Shown piece by piece: positions 10,084-63,837 of a stretch of DNA of 64,000 bases. Every line of letters begins with the position of its first letter. The first letter of the stretch is position 1. The notes beneath the pieces were generated by a model that saw nothing but the letters and a program-made list of their open reading frames with translations, was not told the origin of the DNA and searched no databases. The DNA is from Monocercomonoides exilis PA203 (Eukaryota; Protista; Preaxostyla): NCBI GenBank assembly GCA_001643675.2, contig LSRY02000009.1:1240001-1304000 (forward strand), given 5' to 3'. Made by a program: the position numbers and the translations under genes.

Positions 10084-10330
10084 TTGAAGTCCCTCGTTCT
10101 CCTCTCTCCTCTGATCTTAAACCCTCATGCCTAGCACCTTGTCGTGCGGCGGATGACCAGAGGGACTGCGGATGAAGGTGCGACCTCAATCCCTACTCCC
10201 TCCCCCTCCTGCGCTGTTTTCGGGGGGTTCTCGATCGAGTCTTCTGTACTTGAGCGGGCATAATAATTTGTCCTATGCTTCTCTCTCCGCGTTTCCCCCG
10301 ATCGGTTTCGAGCTTCTTCTGCAAGGCAGT

Positions 10331-12352
10331 TTATCTACCCTCCGTAAGCTCCATAATGTTGCGGGGAATTATGGAGGGTGTCTCATCACCCCTGGTGGGT
10401 TGTGTTATATCGTCCTCATGATGCGAACTCTTCTCTCGAGTCGACCCTCGTCTCTTCGAATTCTTTCTCTTGCTCGTCTCCGCTTCTCCCCCAGATTGTG
10501 ATGTTTCTTCAGGATACTCCTTTGTTTCAGATTCTGTATTCTCATTTGAAATTTCTTCTCCTTTGCTGTCCTTCTCCGACTTTCCTCCCTTCTCTGCCAG
10601 GGGTACTGGGCCACCGATTGTATCCAGGATCCATCTCGTGTTCTGAACTGGTAACACGGTGTAATACTCCTGGGCTACTCTAGAGCCTGGCGCCCATCTC
10701 GCGTACGCATTGATTGCTTTCCAATCTGCATCTTGTTGTCTTGCTAAGTGTGTTATCACAGCGTGTCTTATCGAGTACGCGGTAAATGTGTCGGGTATTC
10801 CGTTCTCTCTCAGGACAGCCACTAATTCTTCTTTGATCCTCTGCAAGTTTGCAGGTTGCCTCCCCCTGAGATCGAACCACACATGTTCGTCTCTAAAGGT
10901 TGTCTTTATATAATCCATCCAGCGTTGGAGCGCTACAACCGCATCGATACGTGGGTTTGGATGCTTATTTATAATAACCTTAACAGTCTCTCCCCCTGAT
11001 GTCTTTGTTTGTACTTGTGTCTGGACTAGATTCTCTTTAAATATCGTTGTATCACTTCTCATCCTCTCCAGCTCTGCTGGCCTTAGAGCTCCAAAGATCA
11101 TAGTCAGGATGAGAGCTCTCCTTTGGAGGGTCTGTGGGTCTTTCATATCGTGAGTGGCTTCTGCCCATTTCGTGATGATTGTCAAGTCCCACATCGATTT
11201 GTATCGTTTGCCTCTTCTTGGTTTCTCCCCCACATAGGTCTTTAGAAATGTCTCTATGTCTTTCACGTCAACCTTAGTCTCTCTGAAGAGGTTAATAGAA
11301 TCCAGCACCTTCCGTACTGTCTGATTTATCACTCCACTTGAGAGGTTTGTATTCGAAAGTGTTTCGATGAACTCTGCCATAATCCATTTAGCATCTTTCG
11401 TTGTGAGGGGGTCAGTGTCATCCATGCTCTCTCTATCTAGAAATTGCTTGAATCTTCGCAGGGCTCTCCACGTATCTCTCTCACTCTTCTGATTTCTAAG
11501 TATTGCTGCTGCTATGTCTTTTGCTCCCACGTGTTCTCCCCATGTTAAGAAGAGGTTTCTCCCCTGAATATTCTCTTCTCCAGTATAACGCTTATTACCT
11601 CTCCTGGGGGTAATTTCCAGCCTTCCCTTCTCATCTTCGTTCCCGGTGTCATGCACTCCTGAAAGGTCCCCAGGGTCTTTGTCAAATGCCCAGGCTGCAG
11701 TAGCGGGGTCCAGGTCTGCCCCCGCCAGGCTGGCAGAATCAGAATCGTCAGATTCCTCTGAGCTTCGTTCATCTTCTCTTTCATCACTCGCCCAATGTTT
11801 CTCAGGAACGGGTGGACTAGCACTATGTCGTCTTCTGGTGTTCCTTCCTCTCTCTTCCTTCTCATGGAGGATAGTCTCCAAGTACTTCCGCAGGGCACCG
11901 GCGCAATCTGTTCTGAAATTGTATCTTGTGTTCTCGGTGCGATTGACTGTAATATCTCTGCGACTTTCTCCCCCTTCAGTGCGTAGTCCGGCTTCTTCGC
12001 CATCCGGCTGAGTGCATCTGCTTCCGTGTTCTGCTCTCCCGGGAGATGTTCCGTCTGTATTGTTAAGTCCAGGCTGTTCAGCTTCTTCTCCAATGCTCTC
12101 AGTGTTGGGATGAGCGATGGCGCTCCCCTTTTCTTCTGGATTGTCCATCTCGTGGACATGTTGTCTGTCTTCAGACGAATATGATCTATCTTCTGCTGTT
12201 GCATCCACGCTCCCTTTCTCTGTAATCTCCTCAACACTGCTCTGGACTCCTTTTCGTTTATCGCTAACGCACTCTCCTGGGGGGTCCAACTTCCGTGGAT
12301 ATATATCTTCTCCTTTCTGTTTTCTGTCGGTATTGTTAATACTGCAACTCAT
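10331..12352 (-). CDS. DIRS tyrosine recombinase
   Basis: GALRPAEL, TKT, YSIRHAVIT and RWAPGSRVAQEYY give an R-K-(H/Y)xxR-W-Y catalytic set. Confidence 0.92.
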   Translation of the reverse strand: MSCSINNTDRKQKGEDIYPRKLDPPGECVSDKRKGVQSSVEEITEKGSVDATAEDRSYSSEDRQHVHEMDNPEEKGSAIAHPNTESIGEEAEQPGLNNTDGTSPGRAEHGSRCTQPDGEEAGLRTEGGESRRDITVNRTENTRYNFRTDCAGALRKYLETILHEKEERGRNTRRRHSASPPVPEKHWASDEREDERSSEESDDSDSASLAGADLDPATAAWAFDKDPGDLSGVHDTGNEDEKGRLEITPRRGNKRYTGEENIQGRNLFLTWGEHVGAKDIAAAILRNQKSERDTWRALRRFKQFLDRESMDDTDPLTTKDAKWIMAEFIETLSNTNLSSGVINQTVRKVLDSINLFRETKVDVKDIETFLKTYVGEKPRRGKRYKSMWDLTIITKWAEATHDMKDPQTLQRRALILTMIFGALRPAELERMRSDTTIFKENLVQTQVQTKTSGGETVKVIINKHPNPRIDAVVALQRWMDYIKTTFRDEHVWFDLRGRQPANLQRIKEELVAVLRENGIPDTFTAYSIRHAVITHLARQQDADWKAINAYARWAPGSRVAQEYYTVLPVQNTRWILDTIGGPVPLAEKGGKSEKDSKGEEISNENTESETKEYPEETSQSGGEAETSKRKNSKRRGSTREKSSHHEDDITQPTRGDETPSIIPRNIMELTEGR

Positions 12353-14031
12353 CCCAGCTCTGACGCATCCGTTGTTTGTACTGCTGGCCTAGTTCTCTTC
12401 CTTTGATAACTCGGTCTGTTCTCTAGCAGGATCTTCTTCCAATGTGTCAACTCTCCTAACATCATTGGTATGACTATCACCGTTCCCTTCCAGCTCCCGC
12501 GGGCTATTGCCTGCCTCAGCACGTGTTGCATGCGCTTCATCCACAAGCTCGCTGGTGGGTGTTGTAACCTCACAAAATTCAGCCTCCCGAGGAGTGCTGC
12601 TAAGTCCCTCGTCTTTTGTCTCCTCCTCTTCTTTGCATGTGCTATCCACTTTCGCACATCCTCCCGGAGCAGCACTCTCTTCCTCTCTTGGAGCGTCACT
12701 TCCATCTTCTCTGAATTCCAACTCCATCCCAAAAACTCCACGCTCCTTGCGGGTTCTAGCTTCAGCTTCTCCTCCGACAGTATCCAGCCCAGATTTCTCA
12801 GGAACTGGGCTATCTCCTGTGAGATCGATCTCAATGCATCCCTGTCTGAGTGCATGAGGAGAATATCGTACAGATATATTACTAACTTCACTTTCCACTT
12901 TTCTCTGATATATGACGCCGCCCGTCTCATTATCTTTGTGAATACTCTGGGCGCGTCCTTTGCTCCAAATGGCATCCCCACGTAAGTGTAGCATTGCTTT
13001 TGGAAGCTGAAGCACAGAAAGGGACTGAACTGCTCGTCCACTTTGACATGTTGATAAGCACTCGATATGTCGAGCGTGGTCATCCAATCGTTCTCCTCCA
13101 GGAGTTCCACAACTGTCTCCTGGGAATCCATCTTGAAGTGTTTCCCTAGCACTTCCTCGTTTAAAATTCTGCAATCCAGGATCTTTCTCCACTTTCCGTT
13201 CTTCTTCCGGACCATAAATGTCGGGTTGAACCACTTCACCTCCGACTCCTGTATGGGTTTCACCACTCCTTCTTTCACTTCCTCCTCTAAGAGGGATAAA
13301 TAATTGTTTGTCATCTCTGTTGTTCCCCGAAATTCTTGTCTGTGTTTTCTCTCCTCGAGTGAGATTGGGGATTGGGGACTCATCCATCGTGCTTTTATAC
13401 CACGGCTCACTAATTTGTCTCCCCCAATCTTCCTCCACTCGTTCAGCCTGTTCACCAGTCTCCCAGGAAGTGGCTCCTTCGGTGGTCCCACTGCTACGCA
13501 ACTCCCCACTTCTGGTGTCCTTTGACCAGTCTGTATCTGTGCGGTCTCTTTCCCTTCGAGAGTATCTGCAGTAGCTATCTTCCAGCTCTCCTCCAGGACG
13601 CTCCCAATTAGGGACTCGATAACAGTCCCAGAAGCTCTCAAGGCTCTCTTCACTACCTCCCTCTCGGTTTCCTGATCGTTCATCTGTACTGTCCCGTGGG
13701 GATGTACGGAGTCTTCCTCTGTGTTTACTCTCCCTGTTCCCATCTCGCAATCTATCGAGCTTTCTATCTCTATCCTCTTCTTTCGGTCGGAAGGGCTCAG
13801 CGCCTCTTCGTTGTTCTCGCAGACTTCCACGGGTTTCTCCCCTGTGATTGTCTGTCGATCGATTGGGATCTCCCGTAGTACTGTCATTCCCTTGAGCTCT
13901 GACAGCATCATGTCCGTCCCTGTCTCGCGGCGAAGCGCGGCTCTCTCTTCTCTCTCTGTCTCGCGGCATAGCGCGGCTCTCTCTTCTCTCTCTGTCTCGC
14001 GGCGAAGCGCGGCTCTCTCTTCTACGCCCAC
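11545..14031 (-). pseudogene. DIRS reverse transcriptase-RNase H-methyltransferase-like ORF, disabled
   Basis: RT motifs: KWRKILDCRILN, LDISSAYQH, MPFGAKDAPRVF, YLYD (YLDD mutated). RNase H: TDASELG*, INEKE, TDN, NTEADALSR. MT-like tail: LVHPF...LPAWRGQTW. An in-frame TGA at 12349-12351 replaces the usual Trp. Confidence 0.92.
13921..14022 (-). repeat. 36-bp tandem repeat x3 at the start of the DIRS RT ORF (EERAALRRETER)
   Basis: tgtctcgcggc...gcgcggctctctcttct occurs three times. Confidence 0.85.
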
Positions 14032-15260
14032 TGGCTCGTTCCAGAAGCTGTTCCTGCTGCTGATTCTCCCTGTGTCCTCGGGGGGGCTGGAGGAAGGGGG
14101 ACTGTGAACGAGGGGGCTCTCCCAGCTGTTGCTGGGGCCTGTTGTGGTCGAGTTTGTGTTGACCTCCTTCTTTGTTTGAAATTTGAGAAGCTTCCTTCGA
14201 AACCTTGCTTCTGGAATTGTCTGTAGGCAAAACCTTGAGCGTTCCTGCCTGTGCTGTACCTCCCTGAGCGCCCGCCCCTGACTGGGGCGGGGCCGAAGGT
14301 TGTGGGAGAAGCGGGGGATGCTCCATATCCTGGAGCATCCCCCCCTGGACGAAAAAAGCTGGTGCTATCCACCAGTCTCCTGAAACTCTCTGGGATGTCC
14401 TTGGACATTCCCCCGTCCAGAAAACACTTCACGTTCTCCCAGCTTGACTGAGGGATAACTTTCAGCAAGTTTATGCGGCTAATACAGTCTGCTATTAGGG
14501 CGTACGCGCAAAAGAGCCCCCTTAGTCGCTCTTTCTCTTCTTCCTCTAGGCGTGTCTTTTTCAATTCTCTTGTAGTGAGGGCTGCAATCGCCTTCGCGGC
14601 TTCAAACCCCGATTCCAGGGCGGGCTGAAACAGCTCGATAACCCGGGCGGCTTCTGGGGAATCTTTTCTTCCCTCCGCAGTGACCCCCGTCACTGCTAGG
14701 GCGTTCCAACTCATGTCAGTGTGTCTAGTGAAAAAGTTCTTCTCCGTCTCCGGGATAAAGGTGTTCAGGATATCATCATTTATTCTGATAGATCCGGCTT
14801 TGCAAAAGTCCATGAATCTCTTCAGTTCTCCTGCTTGTCTCCTAGGCGTTAACCATTCGTCTGGGAAAATTCCCAAGAAATCTTCGGATCTATCTTGCTC
14901 TTCTTCCCGCTTTTCTGTGTTTTCGGAATCGCTCTCGCTGGTTTCTACATCGTCCCATTTCTTCATCTGCTTACGTCCGCGACTGCCCCTCAATCGCTGT
15001 CTGTGTCTCTTCTTTGCGATCATCTCTGTGTCATCAGATTCGGACTCAGATTCGCTTGATCCCGATAGAGATCTTCCTCTTGGTCGTTCCCTCTTCGTCT
15101 TTCTCACTGGTAATATTCCTACTGCTCCCGAGCGGCTCGGAACTGCTCGACTTCTCGCCATTTCCTCAATCAAATTTTCTACTCTTGAAAGTCTAATTGC
15201 AAGATCAAATCCTCTGTCCTCGCTGTTACTGGTTTCCATTCTAACAGGATCCTGAGTCAT
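14022..15260 (-). CDS. DIRS ORF1 (gag-like)
   Basis: First ORF inside the 5' ITR, overlapping the RT ORF start. The likely ATG is at 15260, because the upstream ATG at 15347 lies in the ITR. Called by position. Confidence 0.7.
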   Translation of the reverse strand: MTQDPVRMETSNSEDRGFDLAIRLSRVENLIEEMARSRAVPSRSGAVGILPVRKTKRERPRGRSLSGSSESESESDDTEMIAKKRHRQRLRGSRGRKQMKKWDDVETSESDSENTEKREEEQDRSEDFLGIFPDEWLTPRRQAGELKRFMDFCKAGSIRINDDILNTFIPETEKNFFTRHTDMSWNALAVTGVTAEGRKDSPEAARVIELFQPALESGFEAAKAIAALTTRELKKTRLEEEEKERLRGLFCAYALIADCISRINLLKVIPQSSWENVKCFLDGGMSKDIPESFRRLVDSTSFFRPGGDAPGYGASPASPTTFGPAPVRGGRSGRYSTGRNAQGFAYRQFQKQGFEGSFSNFKQRRRSTQTRPQQAPATAGRAPSFTVPLPPAPPRTQGESAAGTASGTSQWA

Positions 15261-17978
15261 TATTACTGCGGACAATGGTGTGTAACAAAGGTTTATTTGT
15301 TTGCGAAGTTTGATCTTAAACCACCCATAATTTAAGATCAAACTCATTATTGAGGAGCAAACCTGCTCCTTGCGTTCGTATATTCGCTCTATTGCGAATC
15401 ATTTCATCTATCCTTTTGATGAAAAAAACTTTGGTCTCTTTCTTTCAATTCTTTTCCTTTCTTTTCCACTTTTCCACTTTCAACATTCATCTCTCCTTCT
15501 CTCTCATTCTCAATCTCGTTATTCTCCATTCCTATGTCATAATCAAATCCATCAACAACGTCAACTTCAGCCTCCTCTTTTTCTTTATTCATTCTGCTAT
15601 TGACTTCATCCATTCCTCCTTCTGAAGTCTCTTTCTCACTCTTCACATTTTTCGCATCTTTTTCCATTTCATTCTTCTCCTTAACCTCCAACCCACATCA
15701 ACAATCGCGCCCCATCTCCAATTGTGAATCCTTTGTGATTAACAGATTGTCTTCTTCCACTCTTTTCCTTCCTTCTGAATCGCCTAACAACGACCAGATC
15801 ATTTCACACGTTTGCATCGTCTCCCACGTTGCTGTTTCGCACAGTACCACAGCAACTGTCGTTAACTGAATTATTCTCATATCTCCTATTTTAATAAGAT
15901 TTAGCAGCAGTTGTCAGAATAACTTGAACAGCATGAGGAAGAATTTCAAAAGATTTCTCAAGGGAAATGTTCGATTCTCACACAACCACAGTTGATTCTT
16001 CAAGGTGTTTCAGGAAAAAGATGAAGAAGAAGATGAAGAGAAAGATGATGAATATCATCGAACAGTAACAATATCCAGCCAGCCTTCAAATTCGTGCTCG
16101 TTGTTGGGGAACTGGAGGCGCTCAAGCTGTTTCACACACATCTCAGTAAGAACTCAGAGCTTCACGTATATCTCAGAAGCTCCGGCCATATCTTTTTCTT
16201 CTATAAAAACTGCCCAGACGAATGAACAAAAAGCGGATAAAGGATATTCATGCAGAAGACAAGAGCAGTCGAACATTGCTCGTTTTTTTTCAGCGCGTGT
16301 GGCAAACTCTTTTTAAGTGCACTCCAGGCTTCCAGCTAGTGCTGCTTTGAAGAGTGGTAGAGAAGCGTGATCAACATCGATAAGAAGACAGAGAGAGGAG
16401 ATAAGCGCTGCTGCAGTGAGGAGGAATAGAAGGAGAAGGAGTAGGCAGAACCGGACTTTGAGAAAATAGTGGATGCTGCGAAAATAACGATGCAAAAGGC
16501 AACGCATATAATGTTGTAGCATTCTCTTCCGTTGTTTGAGCGAGTAACTCATCGAGCTGCTCAGGGCTTTCATGCCATGCAAACGGCACAGTCAACTCAA
16601 CGTCTTGCAGATTGAGTTGATTCTGCAATGAGCTTGCGGACTGTTGTCTCAACGCTTCTCTTTTCGAATCAACAACTTATTCAAATTCTTTTGCGGATCT
16701 CTGAAGAAATGATAGAGGGCTCCGTGTCAGTCAGGCAAGGCTCATTTGAAACAGAACGTTTCATCGCAGTCATTTCGTCATATGGGCTCATGAACACTCT
16801 TTCGTGATCGTAGAAATTGTCGACCCGATCAGAAATCGCGTATGAACATAAACTTGATTTGAGTGCAAAATACACAGTTTGTCTTTCGAATTCTGCTTTT
16901 TCCTTTTCTGATTGAGAAAAATCAGCGCGCTTTATTTCGCTTTGCAAGAAGCACACAGTCTCCAGCAGCTGCCCTTCCAGTAAAATTTCCTTTGACGCTT
17001 TTCTCTTTGGATTGAGCCTCTTGTCGTATGCAGATATGCCTCTAGCCTCTGCTGTTTTTGAGTATGCTCCCTTAAAAAATGTTGGAATAAAAAAATTGTG
17101 AAAAGAAAGTTGCGATAAAGCTGTGCTTGTAATACATGTCCTTTTCCAACAGCGGAAACGGCTTACACATCTAATCCCACTTTGATGAAGAGAAAAATAT
17201 CAAAGATGACAAAAACGATAACGAAAAAGAATTAGAGGAGGAGGAGGAAAAAGACAATGAAACAGATGAAGAACAATATAATTTCACTGCTCTTTGAATT
17301 CTATCAGATCCAGTTGATTTTGGTGTTCTGGCGAGCTTCACTTGAATTTGCATGATCACGCTTGTATGATCTTCTCTTTTTCGTATGTGATCTCGAGAAA
17401 CTTCTTTATGATCTTGTGGATGTTTTGTGTTTCACATAAACTGTGAAACTTGGCATTGTTTTTGGTTCAGTGAATTTTTTGAATCGGCCAACTCCTTCGA
17501 GCCTGATGAATGATGATTGGATGGAGAAGCATTTACAGAAGAATTATAAGCGATTCCCTTGTTGATAATTTGGGGTTGGTTGTTGTTGATGATGATAATC
17601 AAAGAGTGTGAAATGCCATTCGAACAATAAACAACACTCAAAGAAAAAGCAGTTTTTTCAGAAAGGTGTTCCATTAAACTCATTGAAATAATGCGCACCT
17701 TTTTTCAAAAAAAAAAAAAAAAAAAAAAAAAGATAAATGCCGAACTGTTTTCATAAAAAAACAAACAAAATTAGAAATTGAGATAATCTGAAAATGAATT
17801 GTTCAAATGATGGAATAATTGGAGTGAACACACGAAAAAAAGCACACTTCTTATATATTTTGCAAGCTAACAATATATTTTTTTTACGGTCAAATCAAAT
17901 ATTCATCAATTGTTAGCAATATCGATAAATTGATAATCTTTTTTTATTTTTCAAAAAAAATATTTTGTAAATTGACAT

Positions 17979-18138: not shown

Positions 18139-20360
18139 TAGTCGGGGACAAAACCCGGGACAAGGACAAAACCCGGGACACTTCAGTCTAGAATATTTTT
18201 TTAGAATGTTTATTAAAAACAATTCCAAATCATGAAACATTTCTTGATTAACTTTCTTGATTTCATCCGATGAATGCATGTCAAAATAATGGTCTCTTCA
18301 ATAAAAAATTATATCAAGGAGAATGATCAAACTTCCACAAATCATATAAAAAAAGCAAACACATTATCGCCTCTCCCTTTCAATAAATTATCATAGATAA
18401 AGACCTCAGCAGAGATTAACAGGCTCCCTTTCAAAGCGGAAAAAATTGATCATTTTCTGAAACAAGATGGAATCAAACATTCAGATTTGTGAAAAGCAAT
18501 AATCAAATCCCATTCATCCATCTACAGGCATATGGCTTCAAAAAAAGCAGGGCGTGATCCTCAACATGCTGGTAGAACAGGGCTATTTTATAAAGAAGAA
18601 ATAGAAGAAATAGAAGATTGTGCAATTGCACAAATATCATCCACTAACAAATTGACAGTTTCAGACATTATCAGATTCGTGTGTTGCTTTTTGTTTGTTT
18701 TTATTTTTAATTGTGCATTTTTTATAGTAAGAAAATGTGATGATGAAGAAAAAGAAGGAATGCACACAAACGACTGTAGTCAGGAAAATCAGCAAAAAAT
18801 GGGCACGCAGGTTGATAAAGAAAAGTGGATTACTGAAATTAATTAAACCAACTTTTATAGATCTTCATCGCCTTCAAGCTTCCACAATAGAAAATATGAG
18901 GAATTGGTTTTCGTCGTTGAAAAATGTTATTGATGATTATAATAATTCATCAGATTTAATTATCAATATGGACGAAACTGGCATCTTGATGAAGCAGTCG
19001 GACGAGGAAATAGAAGTCACAAAAGAATCTCAACATGCTTTTTCACCAGAAGCACAGAGAAGGAAAAATGCTACATTATTTTTTTCGATTTTTGCAGATG
19101 GGACGTCACTTGATCCAATCATGCTATGGCCTTCTCAGACAATTTCCGAGGATTTAAAGGAATTGAAGTATCATCGAATTAACTGTTTGGCAAATGGGAC
19201 AGGCTGGATGATAAGAAGAGATTTTGAAAAGGTTATGATAGAAATATTATTGCCAAAAATTAATGAGAAAAGAGTTGAGCTTCAAAGACAGTCTTCCTAC
19301 GCTTTGATTACACTTGATGGGCATTCCTCTCGCCTAAGTTTTCCAGTGATATCTTTGTGCAGAGATCATTTAATCCATTTATTGATTCTTCCATCACATA
19401 CAACACATCTCACTCAGCCGCTGGATAGGTTTGTATTCGCGCATTTCAAAAACAGCCTAAAAAGAGCATTCTCGGTTCCTTCTGATTCGTCAATTTCTTC
19501 TTACAGAAAATCATTAATTCCAGCAGTATCAGAAGCGGTTAATAACTCTCTCTCTCCAAGAATTGTGAAAAAGTCATTTGAAGCATGCGGAATTTTCCCG
19601 TTAGACCCTTCTGCCGTATATCAGTGCCTCCCGCAGAACATTGAAGCCTCTTCGATAGCAGAAAAAGTGGTAAACAATTCTTCACTTTCATGCAGTATCA
19701 GCATGAAATTAATAACAGGAGATAATTTTTTCGAAAGCTTTTCCATGCAGTTCGAAAAAAAAAAAAGAAAAGTCAGCAAAATAACTCAGTAACAAAGCAG
19801 GATAGTGCAATGTCTGAGGTGAAGGAATTATCTAATGTTAAGGAAAAAAGCTCCAATGAAACAGGACCTGTTTTAAAAGTCAACGAAGAAAATTATGGAA
19901 TAAAAACAATTATTCGCGATGATGTTTCAACAGAACAATCTGATAATTCAGAGGATCGAAAAGAGCAACGAGATACATCAGAAGAAGAGATTCTTTTCCC
20001 CAGTGAAAAAAGGAAAAGAAAACTAACTTCAGAGAGCGAAAGGGGATCTATCTTCAATTACAGTTAAAAAAATATCTCACGTGATAAGAAAATTATTTGT
20101 TCAATTCATATTTCAACATGATTCAACGTTATTAAACAGTGCTTTGTTTTCTATTGCTTTTTAAGCGACAATCTTTTTAAACTGATATTTTAATTGCAAA
20201 TTCAATTCAGATATTTTCATTTGGCTTGTTCGATCCACCTAAATACACGAAAAACTCGATAATCAGTTTATTTTTCCATATAAAAGAGATGAATTGTGTC
20301 AAAAAAAGCTTGATGGAATATCCCGGGTTTTGTCCTTGTCCCGGGTTTTGTCCCTGACTA
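18139..20360 (+). mobile_element. pogo/Tigger-like (Tc1-mariner superfamily) DNA transposon
   Basis: 40-bp TIRs TAGTC(G/A)GGGACAAAACCCGGGACAAGGACAAAACCCGGGA at 18139-18178 and 20321-20360, flanked by TA. Confidence 0.93.
18532..19792 (+). CDS. pogo-family DDE_1 transposase (probable intron 18679-18727; TAA at exon 2 start suggests a disabled copy)
   Basis: NMDETG, TLDGHSSR and LPSHTTHLTQPLDRFVF motifs. Confidence 0.88.
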
Positions 20361-21386
20361 TATTAATAAGATCATGGGCGTTTTTGTCATTTTATTTTTT
20401 TGCTCAAAACAGCATAAAATGATATTTTCAGCTTGTAAAGTTCAGAAAAAGTGACTTTCGATGTTGACCAAAATGCACAAATAATTTGGTTTTTTATGAT
20501 CATTAATTTTGGAAATGTGATATTTGTTTGAATATTATTCATTTAATTTGTGAATATTATTGCTTTATTAATGCAAACAAGTCATCCAAAATTTGTTTTG
20601 ATTTTTTTATTGTTTTTATATAGGTGAAAAATGATTTTTTTATTTTTCATTGAATTTTCATTTCAAATGAGAAAAATATCTTTGAAAAATTAAACACGAA
20701 AAAATATTTTGTTTTTGAATGAACATGTTTATAATTATTGTTCTATTCAATATATAACTGTTTTGATATCAATATCTTCATTGTTGAGTAACAACAAAGG
20801 TTGATGAATATTCAGTGATGAGAATAACATAAAAATAAATTCTTTGCTAATTCGATAACAATCATTTAACAAAATAACACATAAATAACATTAGCGCTTC
20901 ATTGTATTAATCATCTGAAATATAGAAAGCAACATATAAGCTTCTTATTTTGTTGCATCACTTTCAAAAAAAAATATTTTTACCACATCGACAGCAAAAC
21001 AATCCACATTTGTCAATTCAATATCAATTTGTATGAACAATAAAAGATATAATAAAAAGCATTACAATATCAACAAATACATGGTGTCATAGTCAATTCA
21101 AAACACAAAAGAATACAAATGCTTTAGGTGCAAAAACAAACTTGACTGTTTTTCTTTTGTTTTCCATCAACTCGACACTTTCTAATATTTCTCTTGTCCA
21201 AACTCAAAAAGATCAAATTCAACAAAAAAAAAAGACAGACACAATGATAAAACATCACTTCACACTCTCAACAACTCTCCCTTCCAAAAACCTCACTTAA
21301 AGATCAATGAATTCCCTCACAACTCTCTCTATTAATGAATCTCGATATAAACATATATAAGCGGGACAATAACCAAGAAATAAATA

Positions 21387-21552
21387 GGGACATATCAGGG
21401 ACAATAACCAAAAGAAAACAATCGGATTCTAACTGCTGTGCACCTGGGAGGCTGTTCGTCGTATCCAGGTCCGAATAAAGCAGCCCGCAGGCTGCAGTAT
21501 CTAATACGAACAGTCATGTCCAGCACCCTTCCGATAGAGTGCCAGCTAAGCA
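21387..21552 (+). ncRNA. Candidate pseudoknotted structured RNA, copy A
   Basis: Conserved with 58401-58538. Helices ACCTGGG/TCCAGGT, GGCTGTTCGT/ACGAACAGTC, ATCGGA/TCCGAT and GGACA/TGTCC; two of them covary with copy B. Confidence 0.65.
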
Positions 21553-21597
21553 AACACAACAACTAGTTTCTTAAAAAGGGACACCATTAATACAATT

Positions 21598-24455
21598 TTA
21601 AGATTCATTAATAGAAGAAGAGTCAAGAAGAAGCTCAAATCTTCTTGAAAGAAGATCTTGAGAAGATTGAGTTAGAAGAGAAGAGTTTGATGATGTGATA
21701 TCAGAGTGAAATGTCTTTCTTGAACGTTGAACTTTTTCTTTCATTGTCGAAGATTCGAGGGCAAACAGAAAGCGTTGAGGAAGATATCCAACAGCTGAAG
21801 CACAGACAAATGAGCCCTTGCGTTCAAAGTATAAATAGTCCTTCATGTGTGGAACAGACAATGATGGCCATGAGATTTGTTGAGATGGTTCATATTCTTC
21901 AAAGTACCTCTCATTCTCAAAGTCATTGACAGATGTCGAAGATGGTGAAGAGTTTGATGATGATGTTGAGAAGTTGTTCGATTGTGAAGTTGAAGAAGTG
22001 GATGTCGAATTATTCATATTGTTTTCGAAGAAGTTGATCAAGTCATGAATTGTGGTGATGTGTTCATTTGATAAATTGTTGTCAATTGCATTAACTAACA
22101 CACCAAATTCACTATCACAGATATTCTTTCCATGGTGCTCAGCGAAAAAGTTGAGTTGAGTGTTTTTCATTTTTAGAAGTTTGGATTGTTTGGAGAGGAT
22201 TAAGTTAAGAAGGAAGCGATTTCGGTTGTGTAGACCCGAATCGCAGAAGAACTTAAAAGTGTGAGTGTGTGAGAAGAAGTTTCTTTTGATCACAGATTCC
22301 AGACACTCAATGACAAATCTGTGATCATTTGAGAGGCAGTCGGAGAAGAAGTTGAAAGTTCTTTTTATTTGTTGATTATTTATTTTTTGAAGTGAAATCA
22401 CAGTGAATTGAGAAACTTGTTGATAGTTGAAGAATTCTTGTTGAAGTTGGTTCTTTCTGATGGGGAGTTTCCATTTCTCTTTGAAGTCGAAGACGAAGAC
22501 TGCTTCTCCCTCTTTCAGATTATCAACAGTTGATTGATAATGTTTTCGTTGCATTTCTGCTACAAGACGATGTTGACGAAGAAGTCTGAGTGTATGAAAC
22601 TCAGCAGAAGAAAGTCCATTTTAGTTTTGAGATGACTTTAATTTGTTTTCCAGATAGTTGAGTTTCTCGCACATGCCGCAGAGGTCTGTACGTCTTTTCG
22701 CTTTTGAGAAGTTTGTTGTCAGCTTGTGGAAGTGAGATAATGAAACTTTGATGTCTGTTTCATCTGAAAACTCTTTCCATAATTTCGTCTTGGGCTTGAA
22801 GATTAATCTCTTTTCATTAAAAGAAAAGATGCCCGTTTTCTTTCTTTTTTCTTTTCGTGCTTCCAATCCATAATTTGTTGAAATTGACGAAGAAAGTTGT
22901 GGAATGGAAGAAGTTTGATGTGATGGAGTGATCAACGATGATGATGGAGTTGAATCTGTGTTTGCATTGTTGTTATTAAAAGATTGAGAAGAGGAGGAAG
23001 AAATAGAGGAACCACCAAATTAAATAGTTGGATGTGTAGATAGTGAGTTTTCTTTAACGTTGAATGAAAGTGAAGGAGTGTAACACTGTGTGTAAAGATC
23101 TTTCCAGGACTTAGCCCAATTGTCACTATCAAATGTGTTAATATCTTCATCGTTACAAGTGATCCACATCTTTCTTATTCCTTCCTTTCTTTCCACAACA
23201 GCAATGAGATGACCATTTCTGTTATCAAACTGTTTGTGAAGAACTTGACCAATGAAATGATAGAACGTTGTTTCTTTGTTGTGTTAGTGAAATGTTGAAT
23301 CTTTTTCATTTGCAAATCCTTTGCAAAATGAACGTTTGTTCGGCATGTCAGTCTCGATTAAAAGTGTTCGAGAAGGTGGAGAACTGGCAAGAACAGCACA
23401 TTCATGAGAAAGGGTTAGAACCTCTGGAAATGAAATCATTTCCTCTCACCGAGCTGCGCAGCATTTTTCTTTGCACTCATAGCAATATACGCTGTTTTTT
23501 CCATCAAGTATTTCAGTTGAAAATAGAGAAGATAAATTTTTGTGAGTAGATGATGAATTGATGATTACGTTGTTTTCAATTTTATCGATTTGTGATGTGA
23601 GTTTTTGACATTTGACGCATTTCCTGTGTGAAACTATAACAGGATTAAAACTATCATGCTTTCATAATCCGTCTTTTTCAAATAGAGTTTGAAGATAGTT
23701 GAAAGCATCTGACACATTCTGCTGCTGTTTGCTTCGGTATCCACAAAAATTTTCCCATCATCTTACAAACGATGGGATCCACGAATGCACTTTTGATTTA
23801 TCTTTAAGGATTTGTCTGCAAATACTCAAAATTTGAGAAGATAAAGTCTTGTTTGAATGTGATTTTGTGAAGATCGTTGGCTTTTGTGAAGTGATTGAAG
23901 AAAAACACTGAAGAAGAGATGCCAAGAAACATGTGTTTCCAAGATTTGCTAACCCTTTTGTTGCTTTTAATGGAATATTAGGTGTGGATTTAAAATCAAT
24001 TACCGTTGATTTGGATGAAGAAGAAATTAATGAATCAATATTTGTTGAATTGTCGCTTGACATGCATTTTGAATTTGGTAGTTGCGCTGAAATGTTGTTC
24101 TCTTTTGTGAAAGATGAGAAAAGATTTTGGAATGCGCGAGGAGGAATAAGAGTGGGTGAAGTGACATATTCCATCAGTTGACCACTTTCCCAAATATTTT
24201 CGTTGTTAAAAGATGAAATTGCTTCATCTGCTGGAGAAGAATTGATTGTCTCTTTTCTTTTTATTTTTATCGAAGAGGAGGATGAATGAGGAGTGGAGGA
24301 AGAAGAGGAAGAAGAGGAAGAAGAGGAAGAAGAGGAAGAAGAGGAAGAAGAGGAAGAAGAGGAAGAAGAGGAAGAAGAGGAAGAAGAGGAAGAAGAGGAA
24401 GAAGAGGAAGAAGAGGAAGAAGAGGAAGAAGAGGAAGAAGAGGAAGAAGAGGAAT

Positions 24456-24486
<31 letters not shown>

Positions 24487-25509
24487 GGAAGAAGAGGAAG
24501 AAGAGGAAGATGATGATGACGTTTGAGTTTTTTGTTTTATTTGTTTATGAAATGGTATTGGTGACGGAGAAGTTCGACTGTGATGAAGTGAATTATTTTG
24601 TTTGCTTTTTGTTGTCCTTCTTTCAACCCGAAGTTGAGTACTTATAGGATCGTTCACCAGATAAGATGGGACATTATTTTTTAAAGAAGGTTCTGCAGAT
24701 GGATAAACATCAGCATTGTTGATTGAAGGAAAAGATTTTTTTAATGACGAAGATTGTTTTTTGTTTGAATAATTTTTTTCTGTAATAATAATATCATCCC
24801 ATGCAGATTCCTCTATGAACTGTGCGTAATCTGGTACATTTTTTGATCTTTTCTTGGCTGATTGCAATGACGTTGATGCTTCTGTGGAATGGGCCAACAT
24901 CCAATTGTTGCCCTTTTCTCAATCTTGTTCATTAAGACCTTAAAAAAAAAAAATAATTGAAAAAATAAAAAAACAGTAAAAATAGAAATTATAATAAAAT
25001 TATTTACAAACCACTTTAACATGATGGTGGGTGAGGCAATTGTGCTGGTTTTAAAAATACTTGGTTTTTTGAAAGAGTTTGTTTTGCATAATTACACTTT
25101 TTTTCAGTGATGTCAAATCCATAGTCCAGAAGCTCAGATAATGATGCGTTGCGCGTGAGTGCTTGAAGGATCATCGTTTGCGTGTGAAATTGTGCATGCT
25201 TACACACAATTGAGAGATCTTTCAGAAGCATTTCGTAAAATTCTAAGTTTTCATTGGAACAAAAAAATAAGAAAAATTAACAAATAAATATTATAAAAGA
25301 TAAATAAAAGTTATTCACAATCAAAAAATCTTGAAGTCGAAACCATTCAAGGATTTCAGTAAATCATTAATTACTGAAGATGATTTTCTGTAGTTGAAAA
25401 ACAAATAGACGAGCAATGAATCAACGTCATCTCCACCGATGCGTTGTATTTCTTTCCAAAGAACGTTGCATCGTGAATTTAGAGTTGACACCTGTTTTGC
25501 AAATGACAT
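21598..25509 (-). pseudogene. Multi-exon USP(C19)-transposase fusion gene, copy A (several stops/frameshifts)
   Basis: Cys box GLANLGNTCFLASLLQCF; His box GQVLHKQ...GHLIAVV...CND (~23260-23150); RRTDLCGMC; transposase FDFKEKW...FFCDSG...FFAEHHGKNICDSEFG. Confidence 0.8.
24296..24510. repeat. (GAAGAAGAG)n minisatellite encoding poly-Ser on the minus strand
   Basis: Directly visible 9-bp tandem array. Confidence 0.95.
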
Positions 25510-26739
25510 TTTTGTGATAATCTCAATATATTATGGAATTATTATAAATAAATAAAAAAATGACAAGTCAACTTTTACTGATTTTTTTTGAATTTTCAAT
25601 TGAAAAATTTCGATAAACAGTAACAAATATCAATATTTTAGCTCAAATAAGAAATTTATGTTTCAGATTTTTTCATAAATTCAAATTGAACGATTAAAAT
25701 AACAAAACTATTTTCTGATGACTTATTTGCATTAATAAAGCAATAATATTCACAAATTAAATGAATAATATTCAAACAAATATCACATTTCCAAAATTAA
25801 TGATCATAAAAAACCAAATTATTTGTGCATTTTGGTCAACATCGAAAGTCACTTTTTCTGTTCTTTACAAGCTGAAAATATCATTTTATGCTGTTTTGAG
25901 CAAAAAAATAAAATGCCCACAACGCCATGATCTTTCGACATATTTGAAATTTAGAAAATACAAAATTTTGTTCTATATTAATTTTCAATTTTAAATGTTA
26001 ATTTATTGCAGATGAAAAAAATTATCAGCATATGTTGATGTTTATTTTTTTCTCAAAAATTCTGTTAGGTTAGAAATTTATTATTTGAGAAAAAATTTAT
26101 TTGCGAAAAAGGTTTTTTTATCTTTATCAAATGAATTTATATTACAGCTGGAAACGAATTGATAAAAAACCAAAACAACATAAAAATGTTAGCGTCTGCA
26201 GATTGTCGTTTTATTTATGAATAACAAATGCATTGAATTTGGTTTCTTAAGTTATGAAAAAAAAGTCTGTTCTATTTCATGCGCTAAATGGTACAATCAT
26301 TTGAATAATTCGAAAAATATTTGTCTAAAATAACTTTAATAATTAAATACTGAACATATGGGTCATTCTTTTTGAAAAGTCGCAAAAGTTTAATTTTCAA
26401 ATAAATCAAAAATTTAATATTTTGCCCAAAATAATATCAACATACACCAAACTTTACTAACATATAATCTATTTCTGGAAAATGCTATTTCAAACATTCT
26501 TAAGAAGATTAGTGAGTGGAAACAGAAATTTGATTAAGATATGAAATTTTTTATTTATTTGAAAATTAAACATTTGCGACTTTTCAAAAATAATCACCCA
26601 TATAATACATTTTTTTCGTTTGAGTGAAGAGGTTATGTGCTATGATGGAAAAGAAATAAATGAACATGATGATTGAAAATGTTGTCATTTTATTGCACTG
26701 GATGCAATTGAGGAATTTTTCCGTGAACTGTGATTTTCG

Positions 26740-58400: not shown

Positions 58401-58538
58401 GGGACATATCGGTTTTCGTCATATGCACACCTGGGAGGCAGTGTACCGTATCCAGGTCCGAATCTTACAGTTTGAAGCTGAAACATTTAAAGTACACAGT
58501 CTTGTTCAATATTCAACCGAATAAATATTGACTTAGCA
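58401..58538 (+). ncRNA. Candidate pseudoknotted structured RNA, copy B
   Basis: Helices ACCTGGG/TCCAGGT, GGCAGTGTAC/GTACACAGTC, TCGGTT/AACCGA and TCAATATT/AATATTGA; same order as copy A. Confidence 0.65.
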
Positions 58539-59114
58539 TGCGCATATAGACGTTTTTTTGCTTGACGGACAAGAACTGGAATTAAAAAAATGCAATAAAT
58601 ACACTATGTTCGATGAAAACATAAAATTATCACAAAAAATATGAAAAGATAAAAAACTAGGTTGAATAGTAATGGAAATAAAAAACAAGTTGTGAAAAAA
58701 CGTCAATGACAACTTTTCCAATATATAATCATGGAAATAACACAATTTTGCATAAAAACATTTAACTATCCAAGAAGATCTTACAAAAAATAAAATCAAA
58801 TGAAGAAAAATGATAATACAAAGAGAAAATAATAATGCCAACAGATGAAATTCGCCATATATTTATTAAACGTTGTTCTATTTTGAATAAACAGTTATTA
58901 ATAATTTGAATAAAAACTTTCAATCTTTTCGATGAACTTTGTGAATATAAGCAATTCTCATTTTAAAGAAATAAAACAACAAATAACTTAAAATTGATTA
59001 AAAAATATATATTTTTATAAAGAATATAAAAGAAAGACAATGATGGCCCATGAATACAGTTCAAGTTTTTGCAACATTTCTTATCAAACAAGGCAAACAA
59101 AAATGAATCAAAAA

Positions 59115-59258
<144 letters not shown>

Positions 59259-59304: not shown

Positions 59305-62300
59305 TTAATAAAGAGCATTTAGCACAGAAGAATCACGCAATAGTTGATATCTGTTCTTTATCAAATTACCTGTGAAAGTTGAAAGTGTTGACTGGTGAAA
59401 TGAAGTATTTGGTGTGTTTGGTTCCTTTTCTCCACTTGTAATAATTTCTCTTTTCTTTGTTGAATTAACAAGAATGAGAGAACGTTGTGGAAGAAAGCTT
59501 GTTGCGGATGCGAGTATTTGTTTTCCTTGACGTTCAAAATAGAGATAATTTTTCATGTTTGCAATCGTCATTGATTGCCAAGCACTTTTTCGTTTTGGGA
59601 TGTATTCGAAGAAGAAGCGAGTGTGAATTGCAGAAGGGTTTTCATTTCTTTCCTTCGATTTTGAAGAAAGATTTGTTATTGAAGAGATGTCATTTTTGTT
59701 AAAAGAGGAAGGAATTGATGAACAAAAATGTTGGTTGAAAAATTTCAATAAATCTTGAAGGGAACTGATGTTTATTGATGGAAGATTATTGTTTATTGCC
59801 TTCACCATGATTCCAAATTCTCCATCACACACATTTATTCCATGATGTTCGACGAAAAAGTTGAGCTCACATTTTTTGTTACGAAATAAAGGAGTTGAAG
59901 GTGAAAGAATAAAATCCAGGAGAAATCTATTTCGATTGTGAGGACCTGTGTCACAGAAAAATTTTAAAGAAGAGGAGTTTCGAAAGATTTGATTTTGCAA
60001 TGTTTGTTGAAGGCATTCAATGACATATTTGAAATCATTAGAAAGACAGTTGGAAAGATAGTTGAATGTCTTTTTTTGAAGCACTTTATTGATGATTTGA
60101 AAAGTGACAATAGTGAAATGAGACAGTTGCCTTTGATTGTAGTATTCATGCTGAAGCTGACAATTACTAAATGGTATTTTCCATTTTTCCTTAAAATCAA
60201 ATACGCAAATCACTTCTCCTTCTTTAAGATTTGAAACAGACTCATTAAAGTAGGTTCTCTACCACTCTGCCATTTGTTTATGTAGCTTCAGCAATTTCAG
60301 GTCTCTGAGGTCTTTTTCAGAAGGGTTTTCCTTCTTGTTCAGAAATTTTCTTTCCATTTTCTCCAACAGTTGACAAGTTCCACACATATCTGTTCTTCTT
60401 TTTGCCTTTGTGAAGTTTGATGTCAGCTTGAAAAATGTTGAAAGAGATACATTTACTCCCGTTTCATTAATCATGTCCTTCCACAACTGATTTTTAGGTT
60501 TAAATATTAACCGTTTTTGATTTGGTGAAAACATTCTGAAACACTTTTTGTTGTTTATCTCCTTCAAGGATAAAGGAGAACAATTTTCGTTTCCACAAGG
60601 ATTTGGATGACGCAACATCGAAGTTTTCATAGAATTTCCAACAAATTCTTTGGAAGATAAAGCTGATTTTTCATCATATGAACATTTAAGAAGATGTGTC
60701 AATGGTTCTTCGTTTGAATTGTTAAATAACAATTGTAATTGGTTATTATCTGTGTGAGTTTGTAAACAATTGTTTTTCTTATTTTGAAGAAATTGTGTTC
60801 TTGAATTATCATCCTGAGTTGATTGAACGATTTTTGTCAAATAATCCTTTGAATGATCAGTATTATATTTTTTATCAATTGAACTGTTGGAATAACGATC
60901 GCTTGACATATATAGCATATGTTCTTGAAAATGATTTTTTGCATACAATGCAGATAGTGGATGAGTTTGTGGAGGAGAGGAAAGAGGATGAGTGGGAGAG
61001 GGAGTGGATAGTGGATATGATGAGTTGTGTAAAATTTGTTCATGAAGAGCAAAAGGAGAAGTTGGATGATGCGTTATGGTTGGCGAAGTTTGCTGAAGCT
61101 TTGCAGATGAAGATGTTGGCTGAAGCGTTGCTGGAGGAATTGGAAGCATGTGAGCTGATGTGGGAGAAGATAAAAGATGAATTGAGGTGGGAGAATTTTG
61201 ATGAAGAGTTGCGGAAGAAGAAGTGATATGAAGGTTTGCGTTTGGAGAAGTTTTCTGAAGAGACACAGAAGAAGAAGTTTGCTGATGCATTGCGGAAAAT
61301 GTCGAAAGCGATTGAGTTGACAAAGGAGAGGAAAGTGTGCGAGCTGCACATTGGGTAGCTTGCTGAAGCATTGCAGATGAAGAAGAAAGAGGATGAGTTT
61401 CAGAAGAAGAAAGAGTTTGGTGGAGCACTGGAGAAGAAGAAGAAGAAGTTTTGTGAAGTGTTGTTGTTGGAGGAGAATTCTGGAGAGTTACAGAAGATGT
61501 TGAAAGTGGATGAGTTTGTGGAGGAGAGGAAAGAGGATGAGTGGGAGAGTGATTATATATTGAATTTGTTATTAATGAATGTTTGCTTGATTGAAACATC
61601 GAATTTGGGATTTTGTTTTGAATCGAAGTTTCCAAACTATTTTTGTTTTCAATAGATTTATGATTATTTTGATCGAATTGATTTTGTTCTTCATTAGGGC
61701 ACATGATACACTTATCTTGTATTGACACTTCCGTAAACTCATCATTTATTCCTGTTGATTGATTATCAAAGCTTTGTGAAGATACATCGATCTTTGAAGG
61801 AAAGATTGAACTGCACTGAATTCTTGTTGATTCCGATTGAACAGAGTCAGTATGATTTCCAACTTAACGAAATTTCTTTGAGCCACATTTCAATAATTTC
61901 ATAGAATCGATAGTTGTTTTCTTTCTTATGAAAAACGAGATTGATGCTTGATATCCTTTTTTGTACAGTGCGCTCCATGTATTTTCCCAGTCATTTTTTT
62001 GAATGAGAAATATCTGACCATCACTGCAAATGCACCACGGATTGACTGAGTCCATAGAATTTGAAACAAATGAAATATTGTGACCTTGTATTTTGTTTTT
62101 CTGCTTGAACAGTATTTGACCTCCAAAATTATATTCAGCTTTCTCTGCATCTTCATTCTGCTCGAAGCCTTCTTTAATTGTCTCAGGAAGATAGGCTGTG
62201 CTCTTTCTTTCTTCAATAAAAGAGCTAATTGCAAAACTTTTAGGAGGAAAAGATTCATTCATATCGTTGCATTCATGAGCCAAAACAAGCAGTTCAGGAA

Positions 62301-63837
62301 AAGCAGAAACATAGCTACACCTTTTTGCGCAACTGTTCTTCTGACATGATTTGCAAAAAATCTTGTTAGGATGTTTCAATTGTTCTTTGTCAAACAATTT
62401 TGATAATCCATAAAGCACGGATTTATCATGAACAATTGTGTAATCTGATAAATTTTCTATTTTCGATGTGATGGAATGACATGTTTGACATTCCACACAG
62501 TTGATCAAAATTTGTATTGTACAATTTTGGTTTATAATTTTGTTGGTTTTGAAGAGATGTGCAATTTTCACAAATGCTTCGACTGCATTTTGTTGCTGTC
62601 TGCGTCCTTTGCTAAAATAATCGTCCCACATATCAATGAATTGATTTGTCCATAAATCAAAAACAGGAAAGTTCGTAAATAAATTGTAACAAATTTTGAA
62701 AAGTGAAGAAGCCAGGCAATTATTGACTCTGTCTGAGTCAGAAAATGTAAATATGGAAGTTGATGCAAAACAAGTTGAAAAACATTGCAAATTTGATGCT
62801 AGGTAACAAGTGTTGCCAAGGTTTCTCAAACCTTTCCTTTCTAAAAGATTGTAATTGCACTCCTTTTGTTTTGAAATATCAGACATTCTCGTCAAACGCT
62901 GTGAAAGTGGTTCTTCTAATTCATTGCACTTCGAAGTTAATTTGTCAATTGTTATGAAGGAATGTGTACTTTGTGTAATTAAACTTTGTGATATTTCTGA
63001 TTCAGAAAAAAAAAAAGATAATAACTTGTGGAGAAAATAATAAAGAAAATTACTAACATGTCAAAAAAATAATAAAAATATAAAACCTGTTTCTTTCTTT
63101 TTTGTTTTTTCATCTTTACATAAAATATATTTATCCCACCCTTCTTCATCGATCATTGGATCTATTTCCATTTCTTTCTTGGTGCTTTTTCTGGTTTTCA
63201 AAGATGACGAAGATTCAGAAGAGTGAAGAAGCATCCAATTATTTGCCGTTTCCCACTCAATTTCAGGCAGTCCTAATATCGTTTGCAAAAAACCAATTAA
63301 TGTTAATTATTATTAAAAAAATAGTCAAACCACTTTTGCATTCTGGTTGTTGCGGATTTTGAGGAATACATAATTCATCTCTATTTTTTTTCAAGGTTTG
63401 CTTCGCGTAATTCAGTTTTCCAATTGTGACATCATAACCTCTATTTTCCATTTGTTCCAAGTTCATTGTGCGACTTAGGGCTTGCAGCATCACGGTTTGC
63501 GTATGTAGTGGTGCGTTATTGTATACTTTTGCCAATTCATCCAATAAAATATTATAAGTTTCTTATTCGAATGTGTATAATAGGACATATATATTCATAT
63601 TCAATAATAGATCGAATCAAATTTTAAATAACCAAATATTAAATCTCAAAAAATTTAAAACAAACTATTTAGATTGGTTCTTATTATATTAATGAAAGAT
63701 GAAGCTTTTCGATAGTTCGTGAAGAAATACATAAGCAACTGGTTCACATTTTCCCCACCAATCCGTTTCACTTCTTTCCATAATGTTTCCGAGCGGCTGT
63801 GAAGAGTGGAAATAGAAATATCTGGCATTTTCATCAT
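59305..63837 (-). pseudogene. Multi-exon USP(C19)-transposase fusion gene, copy B (near-intact)
   Basis: 62895-59305 is one frame broken only by TAA (61864) and TAG (60259). Motifs: GLRNLGNTCYLASNLQCF, GHNISFV...CSD, Ser/Thr linker, RRTDMCGTC, FDFKEKW...FFCDTG...FFVEHHGINVCDGEFG. The 5' exons are homologous to copy A. Confidence 0.85.

Follow-up and report, generated by a model that had tools for sequence, protein, structure and literature searches.

A structured RNA with fixed short spacing to the stop codon of USP-transposase genes in Monocercomonoides exilis

The DNA considered here, termed the window, is a 64,000-nt stretch of the Monocercomonoides exilis PA203 genome (assembly GCA_001643675.2, contig LSRY02000009.1, positions 1,240,001 to 1,304,000, forward strand). 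It carries two degenerate transposase genes, copies A and B, both on the minus strand, and 3′ of each gene lies a short conserved element first noticed by a model that saw the letters of the window without database searches (the sequence-only reading). The element is a structured RNA of ~125 nt, or ~150 nt with its 3′ tail. It lies in the sense strand of the transposase gene, is co-inherited with the transposase, and keeps a short, constant spacing to the stop codon. The RNA matches no catalogued family. In copy A the RNA module is located ~1 kb inside the left end of the transposon. The coordinates are collected in Table 1.

Table 1. Positions in the window of the RNA element, its parts, and its host genes
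Feature	Position	Strand	Remarks
Transposon copy A	20377..25926	.	~5.5 kb; 238-nt terminal inverted repeats 20377-20614 and 25689-25926, arms 94% complementary
Degenerate USP + DDD-type transposase gene, copy A	21598..24900	-	ORFs 21598-22554, 22621-22935, 23758-24900
Copy A, whole unit	21421..21573	-	ancestral stop codon + 10-nt spacer + ~126-nt fold + 3′ tail pairing site
Ancestral family-A stop codon TAA	21571..21573	-	position used by intact copies
Spacer, stop codon to helix g	21561..21570	-	10 nt
Helix g, 5′ strand (closing helix)	21553..21560	-	window copy GUUGUGUU, family consensus GUUGUGCA
Junction J1, UGCUUAG (consensus UGCUYAG)	21546..21552	-	nearly invariant
Hairpin f	21520..21545	-	7-10 bp incl. 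2-3 G·U pairs; loop AUCGGA at 21530-21535
Junction J2, ACAW	21516..21519	-	
Helix d, 5′ strand GACUGUUCGU	21506..21515	-	
Hairpin e	21475..21500	-	loop UGCG in copy A, UUCG in most family-A copies
Junction J4, CGGA	21470..21474	-	conserved
Helix c, 5′ strand CCUGG	21465..21469	-	CUUGG in six families
Junction J5, AUACG	21460..21464	-	conserved; within helix c loop
Helix d, 3′ strand ACGAACAGCC	21450..21459	-	within helix c loop
Helix c, 3′ strand CCAGG	21443..21447	-	continues straight into helix g 3′ strand
Helix g, 3′ strand	21435..21442	-	directly abuts helix c 3′ strand
3′ tail UCCGAU	21421..21426	-	complementary to hairpin f loop; second pseudoknot
Copy B (single-copy family)	58409..58546	-	fold 58422-58546, tail AACCGA 58409-58414; 116 bits
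Degenerate USP + transposase gene, copy B	59305..62895	-	PF00443 UCH, E 1.9e-8; stop at 59305-59307

The transposase encodes a ubiquitin-specific protease (USP) domain (PF00443) and a DDD/DDE-type core marked by DFKE, F.D.G.H.RN, and EHHGKN.CD.EFG motifs. UCH is the only Pfam match of the protein, and a Cys box, GLANLGNTCF, is found in the copy A gene. The core has 582 relatives in a library of 1.8 billion proteins, and the nearest proteins in an atlas search are DUF7869 proteins. Intact copies across the families have single open reading frames (ORFs) of 988–1429 aa. Many family-A copies keep single ORFs of 1050–1300 aa, indicating that family A was recently active. In all checkable copies, from families A to H, the fold is 3′ of the ORF and on the same strand. 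That is, the RNA is co-inherited strictly with the USP-transposase lineage, a linkage that the sequence-only reading had put forward as a point to check.

The copies in the window were first recognized by exact blocks (GGGACATATC, CACCTGGGAGGC, CGTATCCAGGTCCGAAT, ACAGTC, and CTWAGCA), which are indeed present at both 21387-21552 and 58401-58545. The flanks had been taken to be unrelated; in fact, both copies lie 3′ of homologous transposase genes. The interval first delimited for copy A, 21387-21552, overlaps the conserved unit, which consists of 21435-21560 plus the tail at 21421-21426, and the segment 21387-21420, which includes the word GGGACA, is not conserved in other families. A proposed helix, GGACA/TGTCC, finds no support outside families A and B. 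The word GGGACA itself (UGUCCC on the RNA strand) has four occurrences near fold A and two near fold B (window 21363-21412 and 21577-21582), and it was not found in the flanking sequence of families C, D, E, and F.

Genome-wide, the core pattern has at least 134 matches, versus none for a reversed-pattern control. A covariance-model search of the genome, which scored 150 candidates, gives at least 141 copies. The only matches in the window are 21435-21560 (129 bits) and 58422-58546, both on the minus strand. Beyond A and B there are eight further variants, namely C, D, E, F, G1, G2, H, and I, in which the variable segments differ and still pair; H and I were read as 80-nt pattern stretches only. 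Thus, the fold holds across at least ten transposon families. Nucleotide diversity in family A is 0.026–0.043 in the fold versus 0.08–0.2 in the flanks, and the fold is among the least variable stretches compared in that family, being matched only by the best coding stretches. As judged by this sequence comparison, the fold is under purifying selection. In the published M. exilis assembly of 101 contigs, most repeats are unclassified (PMC8767320).

Several loci depart from the arrangement of a single fold. Behind one transposase ORF, two diverged folds, G1 and G2, are found in tandem 23 nt apart (L042:1339-1609, corresponding to C1:334015-334285). The sister locus, L043, has a single chimeric unit in which helix d is unpaired, and which looks like a G1/G2 recombinant. 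Three transposase copies of further families, 52–54% identical and one of them with a 1093-aa open frame, are located at C49:534205-535086, C9:352484-353419, and C7:1572361-1573290; among the 150 candidates scored, none of the listed model matches is near them.

The architecture of the fold, read on the minus strand, is as follows. Helix g, of 8 bp, closes the domain, with the family consensus GTTGTGCA/TGCACAAC. In the window copy A the 5′ strand of this helix is the mutated one, which is why the sequence-only reading missed the helix. Junction J1 follows, and its residues G10, C11, and U12 are invariant. Helix d, of 10 bp, encloses hairpin e, the UGCG and UUCG loops of which are UNCG-type tetraloops on the minus strand. 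The 5-bp helix c crosses helix d, since the loop of c supplies the 3′ strand of d, and a pseudoknot results.

Support for the pairing comes from 40 distinct sequences, in which 90% of 1635 cells are standard pairs and 29 of the 41 pairs change on both sides. None of 500 shuffles reached this level of pairing and covariation, and slid controls pair at 32–42%. Helices g, f, d, and e each have 6–9 pairs with two-sided changes, including six of the eight pairs of helix g across families and eight of the ten pairs of helix d. The exchange of GGCTGTTCGT/ACGAACAGTC in copy A for GGCAGTGTAC/GTACACAGTC in copy B, proposed from the two window copies, is real and extends to at least eight more variants; the same sequences bear out the wider covariation that the sequence-only reading had wanted examined across more copies. 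To our knowledge, structured RNAs with this level of covariation and of invariant junctions are nearly always functional.

A second pseudoknot is formed by the hairpin f loop and the tail. The pairing is 6 bp in family A, 6 bp in family B (UCGGUU/AACCGA, compensated), 5 bp in E, and 8 bp in F, and the tail site is 7–9 nt past helix g in these families. Shuffled tails paired as well in 6 of 500 trials for A, 16 of 500 for B, 8 of 500 for E, and none of 500 for F. The DNA-level version of this pairing, ATCGGA/TCCGAT versus TCGGTT/AACCGA, had been proposed from copies A and B, and it is genuine, as it beats shuffled tails in all four families. The loop/tail pairing was not found in families C, D, and G. 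In family H, a GCAA tetraloop caps hairpin f where families A, B, E, and F have the loop/tail pairing.

The strand of the RNA needs closer scrutiny, since the sequence-only reading placed it on the plus strand, convergent with the transposase. The pairing of the whole fold is similar on the two strands, at 88.7% on minus versus 87.3% on plus, and the decision in favour of the minus strand rests on details: the G·U balance, hairpin f, helix c, the tetraloops, and the folding energies. With one representative per family, the minus strand has 20 G·U versus 11 A·C pairs. Of these A·C pairs, six fall at one conserved position, pair 2-9′ of helix d, outside which the balance is 20:5. Hairpin f cells are paired at 95–97% on minus versus 83% on plus, and helix c at 100% versus 94%. 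The CUUGG/CCAGG version of helix c, found in six families, contains a U·G on minus and a C·A mismatch on plus. The hairpin e loops of family A are UUCG, UGCG, and UCCG on minus, and UNCG and GNRA loops exist on the minus strand only. Finally, the minimum free energy is lower on minus in five of seven families, by 6–11 kcal/mol in B and E. The favoured assignment, therefore, is the window minus strand, i.e., the sense strand of the USP-DDD transposase gene, and the RNA is co-directional with the transposase rather than convergent with it, placing it at the head of the 3′ untranslated region of the transposase mRNA.

These details bear directly on the alternative first proposed, namely an independent plus-strand non-coding RNA or ribozyme that is convergent with the transposase and has a core like that of group I introns. 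Its credit is that pair 2-9′ of helix d would be G·U on plus in six families and that the plus strand also folds well, with z of about −5 in families A and D. Set against this are the wobble balance, the minus-only UNCG and GNRA loops, the helix c mismatch, and the poorer hairpin f, to which is added the fixed spacing to a sense-strand stop codon, pointing to the sense transcript. Nor is a group I match found in Rfam; only 2 nt are present where P4-P6 belongs, and the helix order that suggested a P3-P7-P8-P9 core fits the plus strand only, the one disfavoured by the wobble balance. Such a plus-strand RNA is accordingly held to be very improbable, and a group I intron core is rejected.

The position of the fold relative to the stop codon is the next line of evidence. 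In intact copies, the spacer from the stop codon to helix g is 10 nt in family A, 8–11 nt in C, 9 nt in each of D, E, and F, and 14–18 nt in G. UAA, UAG, or UGA serves as the stop codon, and the C-terminal peptides are unrelated between families. The C-terminal tails in C and D exceed those in A, E, and F by ~190 nt, yet the ORF end keeps its distance to the fold. In all eight family-A copies checked, 41 nt separate the aligned ORF end from the fold. The ORFs of two intact family-A copies, L033 (1142 aa) and L034 (1236 aa), terminate in ...ESQNCSFGVPF.

The window copies themselves obscure this arrangement. Copy A is degenerate: besides the mutated closing helix it has a premature TAA at 21598-21600, and its window ORF ends in ...INES. 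In copy B, the stop codon is 758 nt from the fold because of a microsatellite-rich insertion. The distances initially given, ~50 nt past the stop in A and ~770 bp in B, are explained by the premature TAA and the insertion, respectively; measured from the ancestral stop of copy A, the fold is 10 nt away. In old copies, microsatellites have invaded the surroundings of the fold: 58547-59304, between the copy B stop and fold, contains (GT)n and (GTTT)n, and a family-C copy (L032:1660-1800) has a long (AAAT)n just 3′ of the fold.

A pseudoknot so placed might be a recoding signal, i.e., a stimulator of readthrough or frameshifting 8–10 nt past the stop. The murine leukaemia virus gag-pol junction and −1 frameshift sites have pseudoknot stimulators close downstream of the recoded codon. 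The geometry agrees, in that a stable pseudoknot would sit at the mRNA entry channel with a spacer that fits the 5–9 nt of known stimulators, and in both systems a pseudoknotted fold lies ~8–10 nt after the A-site codon. The fold, however, is far larger than an H-type pseudoknot and no extended protein is conserved: the in-frame extension is 10–48 codons, ends inside the fold, and encodes a peptide that differs from family to family. Moreover, families disagree in the reading frame relative to the fold, no slippery heptamer is conserved, and there is no downstream ORF of at least 60 aa. Readthrough, frameshifting, and reinitiation are largely refuted for want of a conserved extension or downstream ORF, and a recoding role is given very little credence.

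The explanation that we tentatively rank first, at somewhat less than even confidence, is that the fold is a stop-codon-proximal cis element of the 3′ untranslated region (UTR), an insulator or roadblock that would shield the transposase mRNA from decay. The 8–10 nt spacer is close to the downstream reach of a ribosome with a stop codon in the A site. From this it follows that the ORF could likely be read to its end with the fold intact. The fold would then sit intact against the terminating ribosome and act at or just after translation termination. The message to be shielded is intron-less and has a 3′ region of ~1 kb that may run on into host DNA, depending on the insertion site. The threats countered would be nonsense-mediated decay or 5′–3′ decay; intron-less mRNAs with long 3′ regions are of the kind on which nonsense-mediated decay typically acts. 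The oxymonad Streblomastix expresses UPF1 (PMC1501061), which adds plausibility to the proposal.

The stability element of Rous sarcoma virus is the nearest functional precedent, and the termination-proximal insulator is ranked first for this reason. That element is located immediately after the gag stop codon, has a minimal size of 155 nt, and works independently of the identity of the stop (PMC2925335). The two are alike in being ~150-nt non-coding RNAs directly downstream of a stop codon, with a long 3′ region following; stop identity is irrelevant to both, and both belong to a selfish genetic element. In the transposon, the fold is found directly 3′ of the authentic stop codon, whichever stop is used. 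The likeness is one of position and size, protection from nonsense-mediated decay being known for the viral element and only proposed for the fold. The two differ in that there is no sequence or fold relation between them, and the hosts are a retrovirus and a eukaryotic DNA transposon. The fixed stop distance ties the RNA to translation termination and offers a concrete handle for tests.

Several observations weigh against the insulator proposal or against parts of the structure it invokes. The Rous sarcoma virus element is not a compact pseudoknotted RNA and, as far as is known, requires neither a fixed spacing nor a pseudoknot. Helix c shows no two-sided covariation, as C-G alternates with U·G only. 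This helix, read as ACCTGG/CCAGGT from the window copies, is conserved, and the c/d pseudoknot rests on conservation. Pair 2-9′ of helix d is A·C on the minus strand in six families, where plus would read G·U; elsewhere on minus it is G-C in E, A-U in G2 and H, and G·U in I, and it is treated here as a conserved non-Watson–Crick site. Some 28 junction nucleotides are invariant across families whose transposases are 44–56% identical, a degree of constraint that exceeds the demands of a simple roadblock and resembles that of a catalytic or specific-binding core. Lastly, in the probable homologue outside M. exilis described below (L055), the fold begins ~52 nt after the called stop.

Three other proposals, namely a ribozyme, a block to Xrn1, and an RNA partner for the transposase, are kept under consideration because of the many invariant nucleotides in the junctions, the loop contact of tertiary type, and the conserved A·C. 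The first and third can be combined in the broader proposal that the fold is a new catalytic or cofactor RNA of a eukaryotic cut-and-paste DNA transposon, either a self-cleaving ribozyme or an RNA subunit of the USP-DDD transposase loaded at the end of translation. This broader proposal is possible and on the doubtful side. We know of no such structured RNA for a eukaryotic cut-and-paste DNA transposon.

As a ribozyme, the fold would be a new self-cleaving class in the sense transcript that cuts just past the ORF, so setting the mRNA 3′ end or freeing the 3′ region. Mobile elements do carry self-cleaving ribozymes, such as the HDV-like (hepatitis delta virus-like) ribozymes of R2 and other non-long-terminal-repeat elements, and the hammerheads of Penelope-like elements and retrozymes. 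Like the fold, these are small, conserved, pseudoknotted RNAs with conserved junction nucleotides in an element transcript; the fold differs in belonging to a DNA transposon and in lying at the 3′ end of the ORF rather than at the 5′ end of the element RNA. The ~125-nt size, the pseudoknotted core with its loop/tail contact (A, B, E, and F) or GNRA loop (H), the ~28 invariant nucleotides disposed around the helices, the conserved A·C, and the lack of a match to any known family all fit a novel ribozyme. A cleaving RNA would have no need for a fixed 9–10-nt distance from the stop, though, and a transposase mRNA deprived of its poly(A) tail would normally suffer. Furthermore, the signature of a known class is missing: Rfam gives no match at E up to 10 for hammerhead, HDV, twister, twister-sister, pistol, hatchet, hairpin, VS, or glmS ribozymes. 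The predicted ribozyme is judged unlikely.

The database searches behind this statement were as follows. Scanning of copies A and B with cmscan against 4227 Rfam families, on both strands with E up to 10, produced chance-level unrelated matches only, and at the gathering score no meaningful match was found over the whole window; the element is absent from Rfam, a point that the sequence-only reading had proposed to check. Resemblances of single words to HDV-like, hairpin, and hammerhead ribozymes, to the thiamine pyrophosphate (TPP) riboswitch, and to twister are not backed by Rfam in any case. A tRNA-like origin was rejected, as ARAGORN finds no gene. A 5S rRNA origin, suggested by the words CTAAGCA and CCTGGGAG, was also rejected: the M. 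exilis 5S gene shares short words only, and RF00001 detects the true 5S genes and not the fold motif. The genome contains two large opposed tandem 5S rRNA arrays with a period of ~1.3–1.4 kb (C15:1360580-1435538).

The location of the fold at the start of the 3′ UTR, with a pseudoknotted junction, also recalls the exoribonuclease-resistant RNAs (xrRNAs). By analogy, the fold would block Xrn1 and leave a stable non-coding RNA comprising the transposon 3′ region. xrRNAs are ~45–70 nt in size, in contrast to the 125 nt of the fold. A flaviviral xrRNA has a three-way junction in which a pairing, PK1, joins the 5′ end to the junction and a ~15-nt ring surrounds the 5′ end; a second pseudoknot pairs the apical loop with sequence 3′ of the closing helix (PMC8374639). 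Tandem arrangements are common among xrRNAs (PMC13556198). The closing helix, the multi-helix junction, and the pseudoknot between apical loop and 3′ tail of the fold resemble the flaviviral latch, and the tandem units of L042 match the tandem habit; in general, flavivirus and plant-virus xrRNAs share with the fold a compact pseudoknotted junction at the start of the 3′ UTR. A latch-type pairing is found in families A, B, E, and F, with 5–8 bp and 0–16 of 500 shuffles as good, and is missing in C, D, and G. No PK1-type pairing was found between the spacer or 5′ flank and the junctions, Rfam returns no xrRNA match, and an exact distance of 9–10 nt from the stop would not be needed. An Xrn1 block is hence considered quite unlikely.

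In the third proposal, the newly made transposase would bind the fold on its own mRNA, either for autoregulation or to assemble an RNA–protein complex for transposition. The strict co-inheritance, over at least ten families and a probable homologue beside the transposase relative P0006, speaks for this; so do the site beside the point of termination, which would favour capture in cis, and the invariant unpaired nucleotides, which would suit a protein-binding surface. On the other side, no RNA-binding domain is recognised in the transposase, for which Pfam gives UCH only, and there is no guide-like free segment in the RNA, as the variable segments pair internally. Distant transposase relatives in Blattamonas and Streblomastix, moreover, show no such RNA. 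On balance, a role as RNA partner seems improbable, marginally more so than the Xrn1 block. A guide RNA, a role that the sequence-only reading had entertained, is rejected. The omega RNA of TnpB/Fanzor and the bridge RNA of IS110 have free variable segments complementary to target or donor DNA and serve an RNA-guided nuclease or recombinase; in the fold, the variable segments of helices d, e, f, and g find their partners within the RNA itself, and the protein is of the USP plus DDD/DDE type.

The closest outside relative of the transposase is P0006, with 31% identity, from the Joint Genome Institute (JGI) sample 3300010163 (contig Ga0136175_10120470). Behind the P0006 ORF, the stretch L055:2092-2245 contains the blocks UGCUUAC, GGACUUGUGG, and UUCCCAGG in the M. 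exilis order. Helices can be drawn at the g, f, d, and e positions, a c-type strand is contiguous with the closing helix, and the folding z is −5.7. The stretch is not scored by the M. exilis covariance model. From these sequence features it is a probable distant homologue of the fold. The covariance model found nothing beside more distant transposase relatives (Blattamonas L054, L064, and L065; Streblomastix L063; metagenome contigs L056–L060), exact-pattern scans of metagenome and viral contigs gave no matches, and a protein-guided metagenome scan gave no relatives. Two pattern matches in bacterial or archaeal genomes were rejected, because ~4 are expected by chance; both lie inside bacterial ORFs, and neither is scored by the covariance model.

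Finally, the element might act as DNA, either as a protein-binding site or as a single-stranded DNA structure used in transposition. It is, after all, inside a transposon and conserved at the nucleotide level, and G·T pairs are tolerated in DNA hairpins. Against a DNA role are the strand-asymmetric wobbles, the stabilising tetraloops typical of RNA, the distance of ~1 kb from the terminal repeat, and the coupling to the stop codon. Cut-and-paste DDD/DDE transposases act on double-stranded ends, which also counts against it. A DNA-level function is thus scarcely credible.

Returning to the insulator reading, if this or the exonuclease block were true, DNA transposons would share post-transcriptional tricks with retroviruses and flaviviruses, and the fold would be a compact, portable mRNA-stabilising element. 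If, instead, the ribozyme or transposase-cofactor proposal were true, the fold would be a new RNA class. With more than 130 copies in at least ten diverged families, many with intact ORFs, one culturable protist provides a natural experiment.

Some features of the transposon and its surroundings are recorded here. The region between fold and terminal repeat (20614-21082, and the matching parts of L003–L030) is modular: ~350 nt past the fold are common to all family-A copies, beyond which the homology is interrupted at two or three fixed points and gives way to segments specific to subfamilies, suggesting recombination between elements. Among family-A copies, the protein diverges most in its N-terminal part, and the USP-bearing ORF of copy A (23758-24900, minus strand) has a run of ~90 residues that is almost pure serine. 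Just left of transposon copy A, an ORF on the plus strand (18737-19792) has a DDE_1 match (PF03184, E 4e-10) and belongs to a different, pogo/Tigger-type transposon. Farther left, positions 6001-16000 form a GC-rich block, at 0.42–0.50 versus ~0.30 elsewhere, with strong negative GC and AT skew.

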